Position numbers and translations under genes: made by a program. The notes beneath the pieces were generated by a model that made no database searches, had not been told where the DNA came from, and saw nothing but the letters and a program-made list of their open reading frames with translations. A DNA stretch of 64,000 nt. It comes from Trichoplax adhaerens. Taxonomy: Eukaryota; Animalia; Placozoa. The DNA lies in the NCBI RefSeq assembly GCF_000150275.1, contig NW_002060950.1:2840106-2904105 (forward strand). Reading direction: 5' to 3'. Positions 42,598 through 57,300 of this stretch are shown one piece after another. The first letter of the stretch is position 1, and every line of letters starts with the position of its first letter.

Positions 42598-45500
42598 AAT
42601 TAAGACTTCAGGACCAATTATATTATCATAATGTTGCAGCTAGTGATGCTGTTAGGGTAGGCAACCATTCCAGCTGTTTCAAATCGACCGTAGTTAGTTT
42701 TATCTACCATAAGAAAGCGATTTTGACACCGACAACATCGACGAAAAATTTAATTTCGACAAGACTATTGGCAATTTCTCGTAAAAAATGTGTATTTGTA
42801 TGTAATATCTTTGTCCTTACATGTAGTATAATTATTTTAGAAATTATCCAACGTGTGGCAATCGATTGCTGAAATTATAAAATTTCGTAGCAAATTTACA
42901 TTACTTTAGAAAATATATCAAGGACATGAATTGTGCTATTATAAAGTGCATTTACGATATCAGTTGATGATCGTTGGTTTGAGGTATTAATGAGCAATTT
43001 AAGGTTTACATACTTTGATGTTGGCCAGCTAATTATTAATGATATTTTTAGTTAGTGACTGTTGATAAAGTATTACGAGTTAAATTTACTTACCAATTGC
43101 TAAATGTCAAGTATTATATTTAATGTTTTGACTGATAAATGATACCATTAACTGCAGTATTTACATGTTAGTATCTTACTGTATACGTGTATTATTTACC
43201 AAGCAAGATGGTACAACGTGATCTAGGCACAAGACTTGGTATTATATTACACCATCATCTTGGAGCTACTTACAGTCTAGACAATGTGATGATACGCTGT
43301 AGTATCTAACGATAACGTTTGTAACTGTAAGCCGTTGATGACAAAGATATTTTCTGGCTATTTTGTCGAGGAATGTATCTGGTTTGTGTATCATGTTTGC
43401 TGTAGTTAGTGAATGTAGCCGCTATAGTATGAGCTGGTATGAATGATTTGTTCCGGATATACAGTAGTCAGTAGTTTACGAGACAAGTTGCTATACAATC
43501 ATACCAGTATTTGTTAAGTACTAATAAAATGTAATCGAGCAAAATTGTATTGGGATATGACGGTAACATTTTCTTACTTGACCTGCTATGATGGAGTGAT
43601 ATATGTGGACTACTAAAACACCAAGGACGTGACAATCTCTACGGTGAAATACCATACTGTATGAGTCCAAACTTGATACTGTACGGCGTATTATAGACTT
43701 ATTGCATAAATTAACATACAAATTGCTTCATTTTGGAATCATGCGGTAATTATGATTTCACTTTTTAGCGTTCAAATCATGAGTGAATACTGCTAATTCT
43801 AAAGCATATGAAATGCGAGTTATTAATTTAATTTCTAATTAGATTATAGCGGTAAAATGTTAAAAAGCGCTGTACATCTATTCATTGCAAAAATGAATAA
43901 TAGGTTAGAAGCGTCGAACGGTATTTTTGATGGATCTTAGTCATTGGGCTGCTTTTCGTCCGACTGTCATACTAAATGCTGAGCACGCTACTAGATTTAA
44001 AGAACATAGCAATGGCACCGTTGTGAGATTCAGCATTTTGCGTACATAACGTTATGAAACTCCGTATGTTGATGTGCCCTCGATTCCCCAATCAATATGA
44101 GCATTCAGGACTGATAGAGGTACTGTAGGAGAAAAAGCCTCACTTATACGTATATTTTCATGCATATACTCTGCCGCAGGAAGCATATATAGTAAGATAA
44201 TCTACCTGTAAATTTTCTTTTAACGTACTGCTTTGTGCTGAATACGACAATTTCATTTGAACGGGAAATTAAGTAATGTATATAATTGGTCTAAAACTAA
44301 ATGCAGCGGTTCTAACCCTATTACTGTACCGATAATTTCCCAACCCGCCCATTAATCCTATTGATAATTCCCCTACCCTAAAAATTATTAAAATAATTTT
44401 TTCAACAATTTTAACAAAAAATAGCTTTAACATGAATGAACTCGAAAATTAAGGTAGTACAGAGGTATAGGCTAGATGAGCATAAGCCTGCAGTGTAACT
44501 GACTGACTGTCCTGCAACAAAATCGAATTTGACAAAGGCATATAAGCATATTTTAACTCCTTAGTATGAAATTACTGTTCCATATTAGTTTCTAAAATTT
44601 ACCGATAAAGATTAAAAATGAAAATAGTGACTAGTTGATCACAAGAGTTGACCATAGATTTTACGAGTGGCTAAGGAATGCATTTAATTGTGAATCTGTC
44701 TCAAATTGCGGTTATGCTTGCTCATTATGGCTAGTGAAAACATATTTAATCTGTGATAATCATAGACTCTAATAATTAATAACTATAATGCGCGTAGTAG
44801 TAAAGTATAATATTAAATTTAAGAAAAATCAACCGGCGACTAAGTGATCCGATACTTGTCTATCGGGTAATTAATGAAAAGGGAAACTTAATAATAATTC
44901 AAGTAAACAGTTCGCATAAATCATTGTTTTTATCAAAAGACGAATGGATTGAGAAGTAAGTTCTGGAAGATAACTTGCCTGTGCAACGGTAGCGATCTGA
45001 GCTTACACTAAATGTTGTGGCTACGTAAATAATGACCACTTGCAAGAATAAATTAGTAATTCTAAGGTTTAAAGTTAAAAATTACTTTTGATCAGATTTT
45101 AACGGTAAGAGTATAACCATGTTATTTCTTGCAATTTTTCTTTAGTTCGATAAATAAAATAAAAAAGACTACCATCAAGTGTATTATTGAGATTCACTTT
45201 ATCGGTTTTGCTTAATAATTGCCAATCTGCTTGATAGCGAATGACCAATTTTTTTATTTTTCGTTACGAGCCATAGACATTAAAGATACATAATAGTTTA
45301 TTGTGCAAAAACTAATCAATGCAGCAATCAAAAGGTGTAGCATTCACTGCTGTATATGAATAGTATAAGTAACAGTGTGAAATATTTGTGATTACTAGCT
45401 ACTTTTTTTATCTAATAAATGATAATTAAAACAACAGCTTTGGTTGAAACTTTCAATTTATCGTAAGCTTGAGTCTAAAGTAAAGGCTGTAATTATTATT

Positions 45501-45683
45501 ATAATTATAAGGAAGCGTTAGTATAAGCTGTAAAATAGTTCATTTGTTAGGCTAATTCATTTCTCTCGATTGATTAGCTATGATAACGCGTTCTGGTTGT
45601 AATAACTTTTTGCTTGAAATAATCTATGAGTTAGGTACCGGTATCTAGTCCAAAATAGCTAAGCTGCATCATCATCGAACTTA

Positions 45684-46301
45684 TCAAGCACTTCTAATCC
45701 AATCATTAGATTTTGCCTCATATGCATCGTCCCAATCGAAAGAGGTCTTTTGCTGTTGCATAGAAGTACTGATCCAATTACTCGATTTTGCTTCATACGC
45801 ATCGTCCCAATCGAAAGAGTTCTTTTGCTGTTGCAGTGAAGTGCCTGCCCAATCATTCGATTTTGCTTGATAGGCATCGTCCCAATTGAAAGAAGTCTTT
45901 TGCTGTTGTGAAACAGGCCCTACGAAAGCGTTCGATTTTCCTTGATAGGCATCATCCCAATCGAAAGAAGTCTTTTGCTGTTGTGAAGCAGGCCCTACTA
46001 AAGCGTTCGATTTTCCTTGATAGGCATCATCCCAATCGAAAGAAGTCTTTTGCTGTTGTGAAGCAGGCCCTACTAAAGCGTTCGATTTTCCTTGATAGGC
46101 ATCATCCCAATCGAAAGAAGTCTTTTGCTGTTGTGAAGCAGGCCCTACTAAAGCGTTCGATTTTCCTTGATAGGCATCATCCCAATCGAAAGAAGTCTTT
46201 TGCTGTTGAACAAAATTACCTAATGCAGCATGTGAAAGGTGTCTAGCAAAGCCGGTTGAAATTATGTAAGCGTACCATATAATCATTACCTTGCCCCACA
46301 T
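45684..46301 (-). CDS. Secreted repetitive peptide precursor (205 aa), predicted to release TSFDWDDAYQ-amide and variants
   Basis: ATG at 46301 lies just downstream of a splice acceptor (TTCAG|, exon start 46336). Signal-like MWGKVMIIWYAYIISTGFA is followed by seven 25-aa repeats QQQK-[TN]SF[DN]WDDAY[QE]-[GA]K, four of which have the amidation signal G-K. Confidence 0.85.
   Translation of the reverse strand: MWGKVMIIWYAYIISTGFARHLSHAALGNFVQQQKTSFDWDDAYQGKSNALVGPASQQQKTSFDWDDAYQGKSNALVGPASQQQKTSFDWDDAYQGKSNALVGPASQQQKTSFDWDDAYQGKSNAFVGPVSQQQKTSFNWDDAYQAKSNDWAGTSLQQQKNSFDWDDAYEAKSSNWISTSMQQQKTSFDWDDAYEAKSNDWIRSA
45690..46210. repeat. 75-bp coding tandem repeat, 7 units
   Basis: CATCATCCCAATCGAAAGAAGTCTTTTGCTGTTG recurs every 75 bp. 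Four units are near-identical and three are diverged. Confidence 0.95.
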
Positions 46302-47726
46302 ATTTGCTAAAAATGCTGATTTACTCCAATTCAAACCTGAAGTTATAAAGAATCGCTGTTATGAGTGTGGGTTTAAGCTAGCTAATCAAGTCAATCAATA
46401 AGTTTGTCTTATATATGCTTATTTTATGTGGTAGTTAAATTAAAATTATACCAACGATTACCGATTACGTCTTTTATTCATATTGATATAATATGGTCTT
46501 GTTAATAGAATTAAGTAATTGCAAAGTTCAATCTTAATGACAATTAGAATAGAATATAACCTGTTCACAAGTTGTAGTATACTCAAATACGAGGATAATG
46601 TAGATGATGCGTTTAGCTGAATAAATGGACGTTTTTAGCAGGCTTCATTTAGTGCTGCTATTTCTATGATCTTAATCTACATTGTTTACCGTCCAAAATT
46701 AGAATTTTAGATGTTAATCAAAATACTATTTGTAGCATTGAATAAGCATTCTTACAATAACTAAATATCTAATTATGTATTGCTCATCCAATAATTAAGT
46801 TAGCTAATTGCTAGTTACTTATGTAAGATATTAGTCAATATTACAGAATCTCGGTATTTTAGTAACATAATAGAAATATAACATGCTTCCATCTGGTTAA
46901 CATTGATATTAAATCTAAATCTAAATATAGCTGATTAGCTTAATTTTAAATCTTCTTTAAACAAAGATATTCTAGTTAATTGTGAATTTTAAATATTTAT
47001 TAATGCTTCAAATATTACGTCTATTCCTAAATGTCCAGTTATATATATTATATAGGATTTTCATTCAATTTTAATTTAGATATTCACTCCGGAGATAATT
47101 TCATTATTGAGTTACGAATTGAGTCGTTTTGATTTTTGTACTATGGAGAATTTTAGTACAAGTTAAATTCATAAACAAATTTAATCGCATAAACATCTGC
47201 TCTCGAAGATAACCGCTACAAATCAGTTAACGCTTGGTATTTGAAGTACTACATATGCTTCCAATAATTTTTCAGCATGTAACTACACTATTCTTAGTAA
47301 TCATGTAAAATTTAGTTTTAGTTGGGCAACCCAGCTGTAAATTGAGTCGCTACTTCAGTTTTTCCTCAGCAATACGTTATAAAATTTTGATACTAATCAA
47401 CGCCAGTTGCCATAATGATATATGATATATGTATATTGATAGCGATATCTTTGTGCGGTTAAATTTGTTAATTATTATATTGCACCTTTCTAGGGCTGTA
47501 ACTGTGGACTAGGAATAAAGTTATGAGTAGCTCTATGACCTCATGTTTCATTCTCGATCCATAAGTATAAAACATGACTTCCTAGTAGATCTAAACACTG
47601 AATCAGACCTAAATTGTCCATACCTATAAGCTTAATGAAATTATGGTCAAATCTTCTTTAAAATCTGATTGATCATTTCGTAACTAGATTAATCAATGCG
47701 TAGGATTACCGTGTCCTCTTATAAAG

Positions 47727-48010
47727 ATGAAAATTAATATTAGCTTGCTTACTTGCTTGTTACAAATAAGGAAGCTGATCAAGGATTTACTGATGTGTCC
47801 AAGTACTCATGCCTTGATTATAATTTTTAAGCTACCCTGTAACGATGAAAATTGAAATTACTGTACCTTGCAAATTATAAATAGGAGCAGTAGATCAATA
47901 TTTTAATAATTCTTCGCATTACTAATAACTTGATTACTATGCCACTTAGCAAACATGAAAATTGAAATTCGCTTGTTTACTGTAAATAAGAGAAAACGGA
48001 TTAACATTGC
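47727..48010. repeat. Degenerate tandem triplication, period about 110-118 bp, between the two precursor genes
   Basis: ATGAAAATT(G)AA(T/A)TT..CTTG..AAATA(A/G)GA starts at 47727, 47845 and 47955. Confidence 0.55.
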
Positions 48011-48973
48011 GGTATCTTTTCGTATCAATCTTTTATCTTGTCAGCTACGAGTGAGATGATGTTTTCATGATATCATCCAAATTTTATTCCTTCTAGTCAT
48101 TATTACCGTAAGTATTAAATTTCAAATGCTATTCCACTAAGTATAAGCGAGAGACTTTGATATCAGCATATAAATCTTAAATATTACTAATTTAGAAACT
48201 ATAAAGGGGTAAAGATATCACAAACCCTGTAACAAGTAGAAACTTAGACCAGGAGCAGCAAAAATTATTAATGCCTGTTACCAAGATGTATTGTTACTGA
48301 GCTTCATAATGATATAAATTTAATACTCCCTGGCTATTTAGCTCCTCAGGAATTCTAGTAATAGATAAATAGATGGATCTATTGATGGTTATAATAGACC
48401 AAATTTATAATACCACGCGTTTATTTCTTAGCCATTATACATCTCCAATTCACTATGATGAAGAATATGAAGACACTGCAGTTAATTGATAGAAAGCATC
48501 ACTGACTATCCGTGTCTGATCTTCAAAATTAATTATCCTAAACTCTATCATAGCATTATTTGTTACTATTTGCTTACTTAAGAATTAGTATCAGTGAGTT
48601 TGAAGTAGATTAAATGTTTAATTCTTGAATTTATTCATAAGCGGTCTCATATCTCTAATTAAATAGAGCGAATGATATAATTAATACTAAGGTACCGTAT
48701 GGAAGACTTTTTTAACGGAAAGTAATCGAAATTTTATATCTACATCCAAGATTTAGTGTGACTGAGCTCGATATAGCGCAGATCTATTACCTGCATCTTT
48801 AAGATTAGGCATCAAAAGATTTCATGATAAATCAGTTTATAACGTCCTGAAATGCTGTTTCACTGCCAGATATCTTCAATTTAATACTGTATCTGCATAT
48901 TTAGAGATTATTATCAAAAATTTCTCACAAACTATATAGATACAAGATTAGGGATTTATTCAGGAGATGCATC

Positions 48974-49011
48974 ATGGACTACTAGATATACCTGTACATC
49001 TAGTAGTCCAT
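48974..49011. repeat. Short inverted repeat (14-bp perfect stem)
   Basis: ATGGACTACTAGAT-N10-ATCTAGTAGTCCAT; related to the hairpin at 60835-60870. Confidence 0.8.
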
Positions 49012-50471
49012 AGCTGCAGCTCACATATAATTCAGAGATATGAGCATGGGTAGTTACTGTTACTAGAAGAAGAAAATAATACCTAAACGTATTTCAATAC
49101 ACAGTTACCACGGCATCATTTACAACGCTCTACCGTGGTATAATCATGCAACATATTAATCTTGGTATTAAAATGTAGATACACTTTATTTAATGCTATA
49201 GTTTGTTAAGCACCGTTGTCATAATTTTAAATTATGAGGATCAAAGAGCTACTAAATTACACAATATCTAAGTCCCAAATTTACCCAATATGGTACATAT
49301 CAGGAGATAGGCTAAACTATGGACCCTGTGGATGAAGATTTTGATATAATTACGGTACTTGTTCAGACTATTGCTCAGTAGTTATTGTCTAATCTTTTAA
49401 ATATGTTGATAATGCAGATATACTCACTACTAATTCCATGCAAAACTATGAGTTTTCAAATACGATCATAGAATTACTTATTATACAAAATTTAGCTAAC
49501 TCTGTGTTACTTTAAATAGAAATTTGCCAGAGGATTTTCATCTAGAGTTAAGCTAAACGTTGGTCATCTATGCTTTTTGCCTGTAGCTCATGTATAAGAA
49601 AAATAGAGCTACTAATTATTGTATTGAACTATGAGTCCATAGAAATAGTGAAGCAACTGTTATATACTATTATTAAAATGTAGTCTGTGTATAAAAAAGG
49701 TGCTAATAATTACTGTCTAGAATTATAAATCTATTGAAAATGTAGAAAGTATAAGATATTACGAAATTGCTCTTCATGGTTAAGGAAAATGGGTACTGCT
49801 CTAATTATTATCTTGAACTGTAAATCTATGGATAATAAGTAGAAAATGTTCAATATTATTAAAGTTATAGCGTCTAGACATGCATATAGTTCATCATTTC
49901 CTAGGCGAAATCTTAATATCTTCAGCATTTCAATATTAACTTTCTTCCACAAATAAAAATTATCAATCTTTGTTGTGTTCACAAGCTACATATTTATTGA
50001 TGATTAATGGTAGGTTTAAACGCCACTGATATAACATACGATATGTACGCTAGTTTAAAGATCGCAAAGCATAATATCATACTAATAGCTTTTGCTAGAT
50101 GTTTATCATCTCTAGCGAATGCTTACGCAAATATTAGTCGTTAAACATCACGTAGAGGAAATACAATATGGCTATTAGTATAATTTAATACAGCTACTTC
50201 ATAGAGTTATGATCGACTAGCATAAAGAAAGGAAATATAGGTTATGTGCTATCATCATCTTTAACAACCACTAATACTTAAGGCTACTAAACGTATGTGG
50301 CTTAAGAAGAGCCCCAGAGTCTAAATAACACGATGGAAATCAAATACTATTGAAATTATTTTGGGAATAGTGTCAGGATTAGTTAGTCTAGTTAGTTGTC
50401 CATCATGTTTCTGATATAAGTGAGCCAGAATTGAATCTAGCATAAGGGCCTATTGCTATATTATGTTTTAA

Positions 50472-50990
50472 TTACCCAGAATAACTTTGAAGCAATTTAG
50501 CTAGGGGAGCATAGCGTTGTGGATCTGTACGCATTAAAAACGTCAAAATCTGGATGATTTTATCACAACCACAGTTTGATTGGAGCAATGGGGTACCAGG
50601 TCCTCTTGATTCAAGCAATGGTGTGCCAGGTCCTCTTGATTCAAGTAATGGGGTACCAGGTCCTCTTGATTCAAGTAATGGGGTACCAGGTCCTCTGGAT
50701 TCAAGCAATGGTGTACCAGGTCCTCTGGATTCAAGCAATGGTGTACCAGGTCCTCTAGATTCAAGCAATGGTGTGCCGGGTCCTCTAGATTCAAGTAATG
50801 GGGTACCAGGTCCTCTGGATTCAAGTAATGGAGTACCAGGTCCTCTGGATTCAAGTAATGGTGTACCAGGTCCTCTGGATTCAAGCAATGGCGTGCCAGG
50901 TCCTCTCGATTCTAGAGCAAGGGGAACTGCAAATGCAAGGTCGTGGGAAACGAGCAAAGTAACCATCAACATACACAAGAGCTTGGCCAT
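50472..50990 (-). CDS. Secreted repetitive protein / putative peptide precursor (172 aa): signal peptide, 10 x GPGTPLLESR, GPGTPLLQSN and a unique C-terminal tail
   Basis: ATG in an AAAATGG context; signal-like MAKLLCMLMVTLLVSHDLAFA. The 30-bp repeat units differ only at synonymous positions. The tail is CGCDKIIQILTFLMRTDPQRYAPLAKLLQSYSG*. A TATA-like TATTTAAGG lies about 140 bp upstream on the minus strand. Confidence 0.85.
   Translation of the reverse strand: MAKLLCMLMVTLLVSHDLAFAVPLALESRGPGTPLLESRGPGTPLLESRGPGTPLLESRGPGTPLLESRGPGTPLLESRGPGTPLLESRGPGTPLLESRGPGTPLLESRGPGTPLLESRGPGTPLLESRGPGTPLLQSNCGCDKIIQILTFLMRTDPQRYAPLAKLLQSYSG
50583..50913. repeat. 30-bp coding minisatellite, 11 units
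   Basis: TCAAG(C/T)AATGGNGT(A/G)CC(A/G)GGTCCTCTNGAT in tandem. Confidence 0.97.
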
Positions 50991-53900
50991 TTTCTAGCTA
51001 GTTGTTATAAAATTGGGGAATACGAAAATTCTCAACTTCACTTAGTAAATTCTTAGTTTGCAACAAATGATGGATTTGCTGCAATTAGCTACCGGAGATG
51101 CGATTTAATGGCCAAAGGTTATGAATATGTCCCTTAAATAAGTTTCTTGAGGGGCTAATTGCGATTCTTTGGCTAATCATTACTAATTACATTAGAAATA
51201 AATTGAATTAAACATTAATATATCGTATTACCACATGCAGATATATTATTTACAGATGGTCTCTAAACGATGTAATAAGATCAGAAGTCCTATTGATCTT
51301 TTATTCCTTGTTCTGATAGTGCCATAAAATAACAAAAATAGCAGAGAGTACCTTTCAATGTATCGTAGACATATAGTCTTCTTTACAATATAGAGGATAA
51401 TAAGCTATCTGAAATCTTACCATGTATACTGTATATTCAAGTTGGCAAATAGGATCACAAATAATATAATTATAATTTGACAGCAGTAGCATAGATCATC
51501 TCTACCTCCTTAAATATTGGATATTACACATCATTTTTATTTAAGCTAGACAAACTAGATTAATAAATTAAGGATGAATCTTAACATGGGATTCCTAGTG
51601 AGAATATTACGTCAAAGTTGGCGTAAATCATAATGGCTCATTTTAGTAAACTCTATTAAGCGAGGTATAGATGCTACTATAGCTAGAATATTAACTATAA
51701 TTAATATTTTAAAGCATATTTGTCAGAGGAGAAAATGTGCTGCTAATTATGTTAAATTACTTGTACAAGATATTTAAGCCAGATACCGCATAAAAGAATC
51801 TTTATCAAATCAATTTTTTACAGATCTTCCATGTCTGATCGTTTAAGACAGTCGCGTCTGGCAAAAATTGCATTAACAAAGTTATGTTCCTGGTTGAAGG
51901 TGATGATTATTACACCATGTGAAGAATATCGTTAATTTAGTTAGATAAAAATAGATTCTTATTATAGCAATATACGCATCAGATGGCAACTACTAATAAG
52001 GTCCAACATATATTATTCTCAAAAATAGTTATCCCTTGAGTCTTGACTATAAGTCTATCGCAACATCCTGAACATACCTTGATATTGTTCATGTATGGCT
52101 ACGTGATATTTTAATTTATGCCAAAACTGAGCATATTGATCGTTTAAGCTGTTTCTTGGTAAACAATTCGAAAGCTATATATAGAGCTTCGTCATTCTCT
52201 AGATTACTTATGGACAGCAAATAAATTTACCTCCAGTGAAAAATAAAGGTTATGCTGATAATAGGAATGTTTGGATTGCAAGTTTGCGGATTAGTGCTTA
52301 CGTAGGCATTTCCCGAAAAATAAAATTTCTTATAATCGTCATAGGTGTAATTATTGATAGAAATATCTACTTATTAAAATTTGATTTAAGCTACAATGCT
52401 GGTATGCAAAATAAATTGATATTGGATATTTAATCATTGAGATAGGCTAATTATTCACTTTTTACTGGTAGAAGTGTACTTTATGTAGTATTTCATCTTC
52501 TTATTAATTAATTCTATGAATAACATTAAAAGGCTAGCTAAGGTAATGTAGTGCCTATGAATTGCAATAGAGAATAGAAATTATTTGAATTAGATTGAGA
52601 AATAACCATGGTATTGGTAGACATTGGTGATGATCTCAATAACGATAGTTACTGCACTGTACTACTTACTGTATTACATAATTAGCTGATACATACTGTA
52701 TATCAAGTGCCGCAATCTTTTGAGATATTTTAATCACCTCGAGACAAAAAATGGTCGATTTCGGCTCATGTTTAGTCAACGGTTATGAAACAGAATGATA
52801 ATACCCCTAAACGTAGATTTATGATGTTTATCAATTGTATTTGTGTCCAATAAACGTAATAATTGCGCTGATTAGAGAAATTTCTAAAATGTAGGAAATG
52901 GAAACAGTTTCGATTTGCAGATTAATATTTATTTTGGTATTTACTGAAAATTTTGAACATTCCCGATTGTTTAGGATAGGCATATGATCGCTTTCAAATA
53001 TAATCTACGCTTAATAAACAGAAATGAATGTAAAATACGCGTAAATCATAGCTGACCATTTGATTTGTTCCTCCTTTTCCAGCAAAAGGCGTTTTTAAGC
53101 AGCATTTCATTCTTGTATTAATACGGACGTTAAGGATTGCTGATATGAACTGGCTAGCTAAATAGAGACTTTAGGCTTTGGAATATATAGAGTACTGCAG
53201 CTTGAACTTAAGTGAGAAATAGCTATAGTACTGCTCAATAAAAAGTAATGGATGATCATTGAACAGTAATTAGTGCTTATAGGAGTCAAGACAGGAATTG
53301 AAGATATTATATACTATGGCGTTACTGCAGCTATTTTATGCATTCCATGACTATTTTGAAACGATTAGACTACATTTGCCCATGATAAATTTAGATCAAA
53401 TCAGTATTACATTTAAGGATCAGTGATTTATTTTAGACCTAGATGGCTTCTCATTTAATCCAGATCACTAAATTACCAAGTATGATTATAAAAATAAACC
53501 GTAACTTTCTTATTTCAATATTTATTTCGGCTCTAATGGTATGTTTTATGGGCTCCATCTCATGATTTTCGTTACTACAACATTTGTCACACACCGATAC
53601 TTACCAATTGCATCAAACCATTTAATTTCGTTTGCAGTTACCTGTAGCTGAGCAGTGGGAATTGAATTTTAAAATGAAATTAGATGACTGTTCGAATAAA
53701 CTAAATTTATTATACTGCATCCTGTCAAGCAGGTCGTCCACTGTATTGCACAATCATCTTATCTCCATAATTAATCGTACCTTCTAAAATAAAACTGCTC
53801 CAGAATAAGTATTATAAAAGTTTTCTAGCATTACTACTATACGCGTATATGAAGTTTGCATACTGGCAAAAGGTATGCTGCGGTGCAATAGCCTACATAA

Positions 53901-54380: not shown

Positions 54381-57300
54381 TTATTTCTTTACGTAAGAAC
54401 TATAATGCCTTAAGGCAGCTAGACTGTCTTGTAATGGATTTAAGTCACCATCTGTGTCTTTGGTATCATTAATTCGCTTTGCATATCCTCGCATTATCAA
54501 CGTGTTTTCGATTTTGATAAGCGATGATTCTTTGGTGACTTGTAACTGAACATCATACGTACCGTCGTTAGATATCGAAATAAATCTGGCTTTTAAGTTT
54601 CCTAAAGTAACTAAATTCCGAAAGGAGGAGATTGATTCCGTATTCCATTCGCCGTCTTGCAGCGTTCCTATACATTTATGAAGGCTACATTGCATGGCTA
54701 ACGGAGGTACAGGATCGGATTCATTATAATTTGCTCCAATATCTGCAAGACTAATACAATCAGTGGTACCATAGTCAATATTGAGCACAGCTGCTTGCTT
54801 ATTTGGAAGAAGTCTCATGATAAGACCACGATACCACCCACTACTTTGGGTGCCAATAAAGTATATCTTTCCAACAGAAATACCTTTGTGCCCAACTGTT
54901 TGCATAGCCACCTTCATGTTTTCTAGATAATGTTTATTCATTTGTCCAGTTTCATCACAACAATGCAACCAAAATAATCCTGGATTGATAATATTAGTAA
55001 CTTCCACTTTAATTAGATTCTCAGAAGATAGTAGATTAGCTTGATTTATAGGTAATAATGATTCTTTTATCATTCTGTGGAAGCTATGGATCTTACAAAG
55101 AAATCTATGAGAATCCCAGTTTAACTTACACAGATTTTTCTCAACTAATATTCGATTAATATTAGTTAAGCCATTCTCATTATTAACAAATAAATCAATA
55201 TGATAGTTGTATTCATCTCGTAAAATTATTTTTGCTTTTAATAAGACGTTTACATTTAAAACTAATCCTTTAAACCAATCAACTATATCAGGGACCCAGC
55301 TTTCACAATTATCTGGATTGGTAATTCCATATAACGTGCAAGGATAGATGGAAGCATAGGATTGTGCAACTGATTTGAACAAGGGTTTAATTTCGTTCAA
55401 ATCAATAGTTTGCACAATCCCTTCATCAACACAGTGTATTTCAGCATTCTCGTTACCAATAGTATCAATTATTACGCGACGCCAATGTTCGGCAAAAAAT
55501 GCACTATAAGCTTTGCCACATGATAGCTCATTGATATTAACAGACCTGACGTTCTTGCTGTATCTTTTGTCCATAAGATCTCTTATGTCACTATATTGTT
55601 GTATTTCACGATCAGGTTCCAACGATTTGACTAGAAAATAGTTTGGGTTTACAACATCGGTAATAGCTATGTCTATTGTTGCACTGACTACTAGTTCCTC
55701 ATAACTTAATGAATCAATACATTCGTTATCGGTATCTGTACTTGCCTCTTCGAGATTATTGTTACGATTACTTAATATAGGTACATTGGTAGATGCAGTA
55801 TTTTGACCTCGAGTTGAGATATTATGGTCCTCCGTTTCTATAATATTTTTGTCCATTGATGGAACAGTTTCTTTCAAGTTAGGGTGTCCAGATGCTGCTG
55901 ATAGTGAGCTCTGGGTATTGCTCAACTGTTCACTTGTTGAGCGAATAGATTGTAATTGATTATCCGTAATATCCAATTGTAGCATTGTAAACTCTTTTAC
56001 TTTGTCTTTAGCCATTAATATGTTGCGAAGAAATTCCGAATTTTCAACGTTGAGAAAGGCATAACGACTTCTACTCACTTGCTCATTTAAACTTTCTTGT
56101 AAATTATCAGGTAAAAAGATAATAACTTCAATTTGATTGCTAAATTTTTCATCAATAACAACGGCATATAAATGCGAGGCTGTATCGAGAAGTGCAGCAA
56201 GATGTCTTTTGCCTTCGATTCTTGCACTACCATCTAATGTATCTGTTCCGTAAAGCTTAAATGGATAAGGACCAGATTGTGTGTAATGTAAATATTCAGG
56301 CAGTTTATAGAGAGAATTTAGGTTTACATTCTGGATACTACCACCAGAATCTATGAAAGCTACAGTAGTGACAGTATCCAACGCTAGCACACGTACTCTA
56401 TGCAGTTTGTTTGTAACCACGCCATATATTCGACCTACTTTAACTTCGTTACTATTTATTTTTACCCAACATTTCGATGGGTATATAGAACCGACAATAT
56501 CACCCAGCTTGAAAGCCTCAGAACTAATTTTTCCCCAAAAGGAACATCCGTCATTACACCAGGTAGCAGCTAGTGGAAGTACCATGCTATCTTTATTCGA
56601 GCTATTAATTGTGGGATAATTAAAGTCGTTATATGATAGATTGTCGTGAACATGAGGATCAACACTTTTATTGTTATTTCCAGTTGTAGCTCTGGATAAG
56701 GCAATTTTCTTTTTGGGAGAATGCCTTGCTTTATTACTAGGCGCTTCATCATTCGAAAACAACGAATTGTTAGTATCTGACGTTTGGTGTGCATCGACAG
56801 TGCTTCTTTCCATACTTCGGTGTTTACTGGATGTTTTACGGTGATCGATCTTTCGTACATCAGATGTTGAAGATTCGTAGCTACTAGAATCTGGATATCC
56901 ATCGTTGATACTAGATGAACGCAAGCTTCTTGTTATACTATCAGTAATATCTTCAGAGGTCAATTTGCCGTCAATTTGACTATCAACTTGCTTTGCATCC
57001 TTATTTAAAGGAGTATTATTTAAGTCACGCCTTGCATCGATAGATTTGCCTGCAATATAAATTTATAAGATAGCAAGATTTAGCATAAGAATTGCCGAAT
57101 GCAGTTCAAGTATCACAATTTAAATCACAACTTACTAGATGCATTAATTAACACAGACGATCGCCAAGAGGTATTGTTTCTGGTATTTGTGTCACTTTCC
57201 ATTTCATCTACTTGTACATTATTTGTAAAATTTTTTGCAGAACTGTTAGATAGGCTCATTTCTGAAGCAAATCTGCTTAAAAATTTCTCAAATACACGAT

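Follow-up and report, generated by a model that had tools for sequence, protein, structure and literature searches.

A conserved decapeptide-repeat gene of Trichoplax adhaerens as a possible multi-copy peptide precursor

Introduction

Does a short reading frame of Trichoplax adhaerens that spells out one decapeptide ten times encode a precursor from which this decapeptide is released, or a secreted protein that acts as a whole? Placozoans coordinate feeding and movement by secreted peptides alone, and the catalogue of these peptides underlies models of the origin of nervous systems. The frame lies on the minus strand of the window analyzed here, i.e., a stretch of 64,000 nucleotides (NCBI RefSeq assembly GCF_000150275.1, contig NW_002060950.1, positions 2,840,106 to 2,904,105), and all coordinates refer to this window unless another contig is named. 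An original prediction, made from the letters of the DNA, had described the frame as an unrecognized secreted precursor and candidate for a new peptide family, with a structural or mucus protein as the alternative.

Results

A transcribed single-exon gene for a secreted-looking repeat protein

The open reading frame at 50472..50990 is a real, transcribed, single-exon gene, and its product looks secreted. Its parts are the following:

50472..50990, minus strand: complete coding sequence of 172 codons plus TAA, one exon, single copy (open reading frame list, RNA-library contigs, genome search)
50928..50990, minus strand: signal-peptide-like N-terminus, residues 1-21, predicted cut after A-F-A (inspection and hydropathy; layout alike in the homologue)
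50904..50927, minus strand: degenerate unit 1, VPLALESR, residues 22-29; the homologue has GTLAMESR and L-x-ESR alone is kept (alignment)
50604..50903, minus strand: ten identical GPGTPLLESR units, residues 30-129, differing at synonymous third positions only (Tandem Repeats Finder, translation)
50574..50603, minus strand: terminal variant unit GPGTPLLQSN, residues 130-139, in which Glu and Arg are missing; homologue, GPGTPLLQSD (translation, alignment)
50475..50573, minus strand: conserved 33-residue tail with C-x-C, predicted helix 142-155, DPQRY loop, predicted helix 161-170, and terminal Y-S-G (alignment, AlphaFold2, dN/dS)

The open reading frame list, Tandem Repeats Finder, and the translation bear out a frame of 172 residues with ten identical GPGTPLLESR units and one GPGTPLLQSN unit. 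The count of ten plus one in the original prediction was correct, but it passed over the degenerate VPLALESR behind the signal peptide, with which the protein holds ten identical and two variant copies of one short peptide. Tandem Repeats Finder places the array at 50584-50912, with a period of 30, 11.0 copies, 92% matches, and zero indels, and the units of the pro-protein follow each other without spacers. By inspection, the N-terminus shows the traits of a signal peptide, namely Lys3, a hydrophobic core LCMLMVTLLV (mean Kyte-Doolittle value 2.9), and A-F-A before Val22; the homologue described below likewise shows a basic n-region and a hydrophobic core and has A-x-A ahead of its first unit. 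The mature protein of 151 residues contains 29 Leu, 25 Pro, and 24 Gly and carries a net charge of +2, and its tail begins with C-G-C and ends with Y-S-G directly before the TAA. The genome (105.6 Mb, 1414 contigs), searched for the complete protein and separately for its tail, revealed no paralogue.

Four public sequencing runs (X1, X4, X7, and X12) were compared over 45500-51400 (5901 letters). Contigs of X1 cover every bin at flat depth, and X1 is therefore considered a DNA run. Contigs of X4, which is recorded as RNA-Seq, are limited to 50091-51109 and 45500-46287, besides a dispersed repeat of ~40 bp near 48990, and except for this repeat the ~4 kb between the decapeptide gene and a neighbouring cassette gene are free of X4 contigs. 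The runs X7 and X12, which come from two further studies, cover the decapeptide gene only (50217-51072 and 50321-705). As the RNA-library contigs span the gene without joints, it is unspliced, in agreement with the single exon expected from the original prediction. Coding differences in other runs occur at 50667 and 50768, and both are synonymous. The k-mer depth of X4, a run of 45 million letters, is very high at ~1000 on a 525-nt contig, depth being a poor measure for ranking genes. The transcript and its signals comprise:

50991..51109, minus strand: 5' leader of ~119 nt, free of other ATG codons; an in-frame TAG lies two codons ahead of the ATG start, whose context is gaaaATGg (contigs X4 50896-51109 and X7 50862-51072)
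51133..51140, minus strand: TATA-like box TATTTAAG, ~25-30 nt upstream of 51109, where the outermost RNA-library contig ends (sequence; putative promoter element)
50091..50471, minus strand: 3' untranslated region down to the X4 contig end at 50091, containing ATTAAA (50184-50189) and GATAAA (50102-50107) (contigs, sequence; putative poly(A) signals)

The ends of the X4 contigs agree with the TATA-like box at 51133-51140 and with GATAAA at 50102-50107. Since the contigs show no RNA strand, the orientation of the transcript rests on these TATA-like and poly(A)-like signals together with the coding evidence.

Neighbouring sequences

On the same strand, a neighbouring gene at 45684-46301 has a signal-peptide-like start and seven QQQK-TSFDWDDAYQ cassettes, four of which are followed by GK and three by AK. 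X4 RNA-library contigs lie on it (45500-46287), and its DWDDAY string is absent from those tables of PMC10580291 that were accessible. At 54381-56963, also on the minus strand, an ORF of 860 amino acids contains a clear Tudor domain (Pfam PF00567, E value 7.6e-28, three stretches). Between the two repeat genes, ~40 bp at 48971-49013 are matched by contigs of one DNA and one RNA run whose flanks are then unlike on both sides, and this segment looks like a short dispersed repeat.

One clear relative in a marine metagenome

The only clear relative is P0001, an ORF of 115 amino acids on a 593-bp ENA marine metagenome contig (L003), which consists of its own signal peptide with T-A-Y-A before the first unit, GTLAMESR, four GPGTPLLESR units, GPGTPLLQSD, and a tail that begins with C-P-C and ends with Y-S-G, the stop codon being at the position equivalent to that in Trichoplax. 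The number of full units thus differs, ten in Trichoplax versus four in P0001, while the unit itself is unchanged. Positions of the tail that are invariant between the two include both Cys residues, DPQRY, and the terminal Y-S-G, so that the alignment supports the importance that the original prediction had attached to the Cys pair and the terminal Gly. The tail of P0001 carries three extra lone Arg residues, two in the first helix and one in the equivalent of the last 12 residues (…MLRNYSG).

Word-indexed homologue searches with the whole ORF, the tail, and the homologue as queries found P0001 alone, and among the 372 matches that an exhaustive profile search retrieved from 1.84 billion representatives, P0001 is the sole full-length relative. 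Other profile matches, such as mucin-like proteins with TTEGPTT repeats and a GSEFLGKR neuropeptide precursor, are unrelated proteins with a ten-residue period, and were rejected as period resonance. One protein that matched through this period alone, P0010 (253 amino acids), is an unrelated precursor of neuropeptide type with ~13 APGSEFLG copies flanked by KR. A TARA metagenome contig (L004, 771-1118) encodes P0044, which has variable DPGFPLYESR-like units, a last unit ending in LKQN, and a Cys…KII tail, and aligns with the decapeptide-gene protein by BLASTP at 2e-20. As P0044 starts with GTG, has no in-frame ATG, and shows no DNA match to the Trichoplax genome, it may be a distant relative, an exon, or a chance match. 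A scan of JGI metagenomes returned 154 pattern matches, of which 0 were confirmed. Pfam assigns no family; the sole match, to the Spt5 C-terminal nonapeptide repeat PF12815, stays below the gathering cut-off (23.1 versus 25.4 bits) and is discarded as resonance of the repeat period in a secreted protein.

The exact protein is absent from a collection of 15 billion proteins, from which records of this genome may be missing. Varoqueaux et al. tested eleven peptides (10.1101/360925), none of which is similar, and in the accessible portion of the work of Najle et al. (PMC10580291) unit and tail are absent both from the curated 60 peptides and from the mass-spectrometry table, whose search database perhaps did not contain the gene. 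A full-text literature search with substrings of the unit and the tail retrieved no paper either, and together with the lists just mentioned, as far as accessible, this agrees with the earlier view that the peptide is not among the described placozoan peptides. The gene therefore belongs to an orphan family of which two members are known, the Trichoplax gene and P0001.

Coding strand and selection on the decapeptide

At the DNA level, the ten identical units differ at 5 of 30 nucleotide columns (Pro CCT/CCC, Gly GGT/GGC, Thr ACN, Leu TTA/TTG, and Ser TCN), all at third positions and all synonymous, as had been noticed before, and pairwise comparisons of these units give 118 synonymous and 0 non-synonymous differences. 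Counted as events, at least 8 synonymous changes occurred within Trichoplax, at least 11 within the metagenome gene, and 5 are fixed between the two, with 0 replacements. Since synonymous sites make up only ~30% (S = 43.8 of 147), at least 24 synonymous changes without any replacement are incompatible with neutral evolution. Between Trichoplax and the homologue, the repeat residues are identical at 49 of 49 positions at a pS of 0.59, i.e., with synonymous sites near saturation. Codon choice differs, the homologue using CTY/TTR for Leu and CGN for Arg versus TTR/CTT and AGA in Trichoplax, and the ten encoded residues are unchanged; no Leu/Ile/Val, Thr/Ser, Glu/Asp, or Arg/Lys exchange is found in the 14 full units of the two species. 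Purifying selection on the decapeptide is very strong, both inside the gene and over a deep split between species.

Outside the units, the tail retains 19 of 33 residues (58%; dN 0.31, dS 2.3, dN/dS ~0.13) and the signal peptide ~5 of 21 (pN 0.55 versus pS 0.59), the latter appearing essentially unconstrained save for its hydrophobicity. Constraint therefore decreases from the invariant units over the tail to the signal peptide, and the unit is more conserved than the rest of the precursor. The non-zero nd that the Nei-Gojobori method yields for the identical repeats is spurious; it stems from multi-step paths between Leu or Arg codons and was disregarded, since the residues are identical.

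The plus strand contains a mirror ORF at 50554-50997 (147 amino acids) with 11 identical SNGVPGPLDS units. They arise because both frames have their wobble positions in common, and data from within the genome therefore do not fix the strand. One might consequently suppose that the minus strand holds no protein gene at all, either because the plus-strand ORF codes or because a tandem repeat contains an accidental ORF, and the lack of strand information in the contigs would be compatible with this. However, the mirror frame of the homologue changes 3 of 10 residues per unit (KSGVPGPRDS) whereas its minus-strand frame keeps 10 of 10, which identifies the minus strand as the constrained, coding strand. 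The minus frame alone opens with an ATG in favourable context and a signal peptide and closes with a conserved tail and a stop that is equally placed in both species, and the TATA-like box and the poly(A)-like hexamers agree with this strand as well as with the ends of the contigs. A non-coding or plus-strand origin of the repeats is thus very improbable, and the comparison across species, for practical purposes, excludes it. For gene callers, the plus-strand mirror ORF, which is not conserved in the homologue, is a trap.

Predicted structure

AlphaFold2, supplied with a two-sequence alignment, gave a model with a mean pLDDT of 48. In this model the repeats have a pLDDT of ~40 and no secondary structure, and the tail forms helices at 142-155 and 161-170 (pLDDT ~70) that are joined by the DPQRY loop. 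As the repeats are predicted to be disordered, they would be accessible to proteases, and DPQRY, because of its place in a loop between predicted helices, might equally well serve as a structural turn or as a cut site. An entry of the ESM Atlas with the exact sequence offers a more confident, solenoid-like model that resembles an RTX beta-roll at a TM score of 0.53. This fold was rejected, since AlphaFold2 did not reproduce the model and the protein has no GGxGxD motif. Feature matches of the ESM Atlas, all at or below 0.77, lie in the noise range, and its structure matches for the tail are generic helical hairpins. The amphipathic peptide that the original prediction saw in the tail found no statistical support, for the helical hydrophobic moment of the 12-residue tail amide does not stand out from shuffled sequences (p = 0.08 for Trichoplax, p = 0.34 for the homologue), nor do the moments of the tail segments; of the earlier interpretation, the gene and its transcription, the secreted look, the constraint on the unit, and the conservation of Cys and Gly stood.

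Discussion

A tentative precursor model

The interpretation that we favour, with some reserve, is that of a multi-copy secreted precursor which would give rise to GPGTPLLES(R) and to a Cys-linked, possibly amidated tail piece. After removal of the signal peptide behind Ala21, the pro-protein would be cut after the Arg that ends each cassette, either by a convertase-like protease in the secretory pathway or by trypsin-like enzymes after release, and the Arg might then be trimmed off. The expected products would be one VPLALES, ten GPGTPLLES(R), and one tail piece of ~43 residues starting with the last unit, GPGTPLLQSN, which would be uncleavable. The C-x-C of this piece could link two chains, two short helices would follow, and the terminal Gly could be converted to a C-terminal amide. 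Graded conservation, a copy number that changes while the unit stays fixed, the lack of conservative replacements, predicted disorder, and a conserved boundary argue for the repeated peptide as the main functional product, and together they are characteristic of multi-copy peptide precursors; GPGTPLLES(R) might act as a diffusible signal, within the animal upon other cells or between animals, in the manner of other Trichoplax peptides that are not amidated and have an acidic last residue (ELPE, LFNE). Also counted in favour of a precursor are the invariant Cys pair and terminal Gly, the purely synonymous coding differences of other runs, and the RNA-seq contigs on both the decapeptide gene and the neighbouring cassette gene, the latter being a canonical Gly-Lys cassette precursor that follows at a distance of ~4.2 kb on this strand.

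The main weakness of the precursor model is the cut site. Units are bounded by a lone Ser-Arg, and P4 is occupied by Leu, P6 by Pro, and P8 by Gly, so that the original prediction was right in seeing no basic residue at these positions; the boundary is neither dibasic nor of the R-x-x-R type, nor does it have the basic P4, P6, or P8 residue of a recognized monobasic convertase site. The putative boundary is nevertheless what the degenerate first unit retains, L-x-ESR alone being kept there in both species. As the tail of the homologue holds three more lone Arg residues, a rule by which every single Arg is cut does not apply, and cleavage would be specific for its context, i.e., Ser-Arg before Gly-Pro, or might take place outside the cell by secreted trypsin-like enzymes. 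With regard to protection of the ends, the units have neither a Gly-basic amidation signal nor an N-terminal Gln; they start with Gly-Pro, and a Gly end exists at the C-terminus of the protein only. In cnidarian neuropeptides, N-termini of the X-Pro type are thought to protect against aminopeptidases (PMC9545775).

Comparison with placozoan and cnidarian precursors

Placozoan prepropeptides such as those for MFPF, LF/LFNE, ELPE, and PRWamide (Nikitin, 2015; Varoqueaux, 2018; PMC10580291) resemble the decapeptide protein in being small, secreted, and made of many copies of one short peptide. Several of their products are non-amidated, two of them end in Glu (ELPE and LFNE), and their genes are often adjacent, as is visible from the adjacent gene numbers of accepted precursors (Table S5, PMC10580291). 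Placozoan peptides that combine Pro-Gly with hydrophobic residues (LPGMFPF, EPGISLFNE, and QPGHALF) recall GPGTPLL. In contrast, the decapeptide gene consists of one exon and is free of spacers, its unit boundary is a lone Ser-Arg, and its helical tail contains conserved Cys residues, whereas the accepted precursors that can be seen in the genome have dibasic sites and variable acidic spacers, or micro-exons, and no sequence relationship is demonstrable.

The Trichoplax genome encodes LPGMFPF(K) nine times in one locus, with KR/KK sites and variable acidic spacers, and QPGHALF is encoded as well. The MFPF precursor (L007 1477-2478, minus strand; G000:C1410:7684534-7685025) consists of interleaved LPGMFPF and QRKWYPF cassettes, each with KR/KK and a short acidic spacer, and an upstream exon is to be expected for it, as a signal peptide is absent from its long ORF. 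QPGHALF, the LF peptide, is encoded at ~G000:C1414:253574-253596 (minus strand, L010), where RK follows it and near-identical flanks are repeated nearby; as the stretch free of stop codons is very short there, the peptide is located in a micro-exon. The cut site of PRWamide is R-W-G-R (PMC9545775), and a back-translated ELPE pattern had no match in the Trichoplax genome.

Cnidarian preprohormones, for example that of Antho-RFamide with 19-21 copies (PMC9545775), share with the decapeptide gene many identical peptides placed back to back and boundaries of a single Arg. They differ in that Gly-Arg ends each copy for amidation and that the Arg of the peptide itself provides the basic P4 residue, and GPGTPLLESR has neither of these.

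Released peptide, intact protein, or active tail

The absence of a canonical convertase site and of an amidation signal from the units would equally be expected if the 151-residue protein stayed intact as a secreted repeat protein, with flexible or elastomeric decapeptides and disulfides through the C-x-C of the tail, in mucus, an adhesive film, or an extracellular coat. Structural proteins of the decapeptide-repeat or GPGXX type, such as mussel foot protein 1 and flagelliform silk, are built of short tandem units rich in Pro and Gly, are far longer, and have units that vary within and between species. Such proteins resemble the product of the decapeptide gene in their Pro/Gly-rich units, in predicted disorder, and in a non-repetitive helical C-terminal end with Cys that is able to link chains; a Pro/Gly/Leu-rich, disordered composition counts against the precursor model in so far as it also suits a structural protein, and the predicted helical tail with its conserved Cys residues would fit as well. 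That the unit is missing from the accessible part of the published peptide mass-spectrometry lists points in the same direction, and the k-mer depth in X4 would suit an abundant secretory product, depth being a poor measure. Structural repeats, however, normally tolerate conservative replacements, and GPGTPLLESR is invariant throughout the full units of both species; 151 mature residues are very short for a matrix or elastomeric protein, the more so with only four units in the homologue, and the solenoid-like model that might have lent the repeats a fold of their own was not reproduced. An intact repeat protein is thus a serious alternative, which we consider rather unlikely on balance.

A different division of roles would make the tail the active product, as a helical Cys peptide or as the amidated last 12 residues after DPQR, with hormone-like or antimicrobial function, and the repeats a pro-region or spacer. 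Precedents are the secreted precursors ending in Gly, similar to Hydra arminins, that have been described for Trichoplax (PMC11452194), which share with the decapeptide protein a signal peptide, a length of 150-250 residues, and the C-terminal Gly. The purifying selection on the tail and its invariant Y-S-G, DPQRY, and Cys residues would be in line with such a function. However, a tail-centred model conflicts with the finding that the repeats are more conserved than the tail, which is the reverse of the pattern of a pro-region. In addition, the decapeptide protein lacks the acidic N-terminal region of arminin-like precursors, so that the supposed pro-region is not acidic, the tail is weakly cationic (net charge ~+2) without significant amphipathicity, and the 12-mer of the homologue contains an internal Arg. 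We therefore regard an active tail with accessory repeats as improbable.

Significance

What is new here is a decapeptide gene that is missing from the published peptide lists checked, as far as these were accessible, and whose sole detectable relative lies on one marine metagenome contig. Should the protein stay whole, it would represent a compact, strictly conserved secreted repeat protein of more local interest. In its widest form, which we put forward as a doubtful proposal, the precursor model would make GPGTPLLES(R) a secreted signal peptide that is specific to placozoans, has stayed the same in deeply separated lineages of the phylum, and is freed from a spacer-free precursor by Arg-specific cleavage outside the convertase rules, together with a disulfide-linked, amidated helical tail; it would then belong, as a highly expressed and so far overlooked member, to the chemical signals by which this neuron-free animal coordinates its behaviour. 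Should the unit be released as a peptide, behaviour and receptor screens would gain a new ligand, and peptide processing in placozoans would include a cut at lone Arg residues that motif predictors relying on KR/GKR rules systematically miss, so that more such precursors may be hidden.
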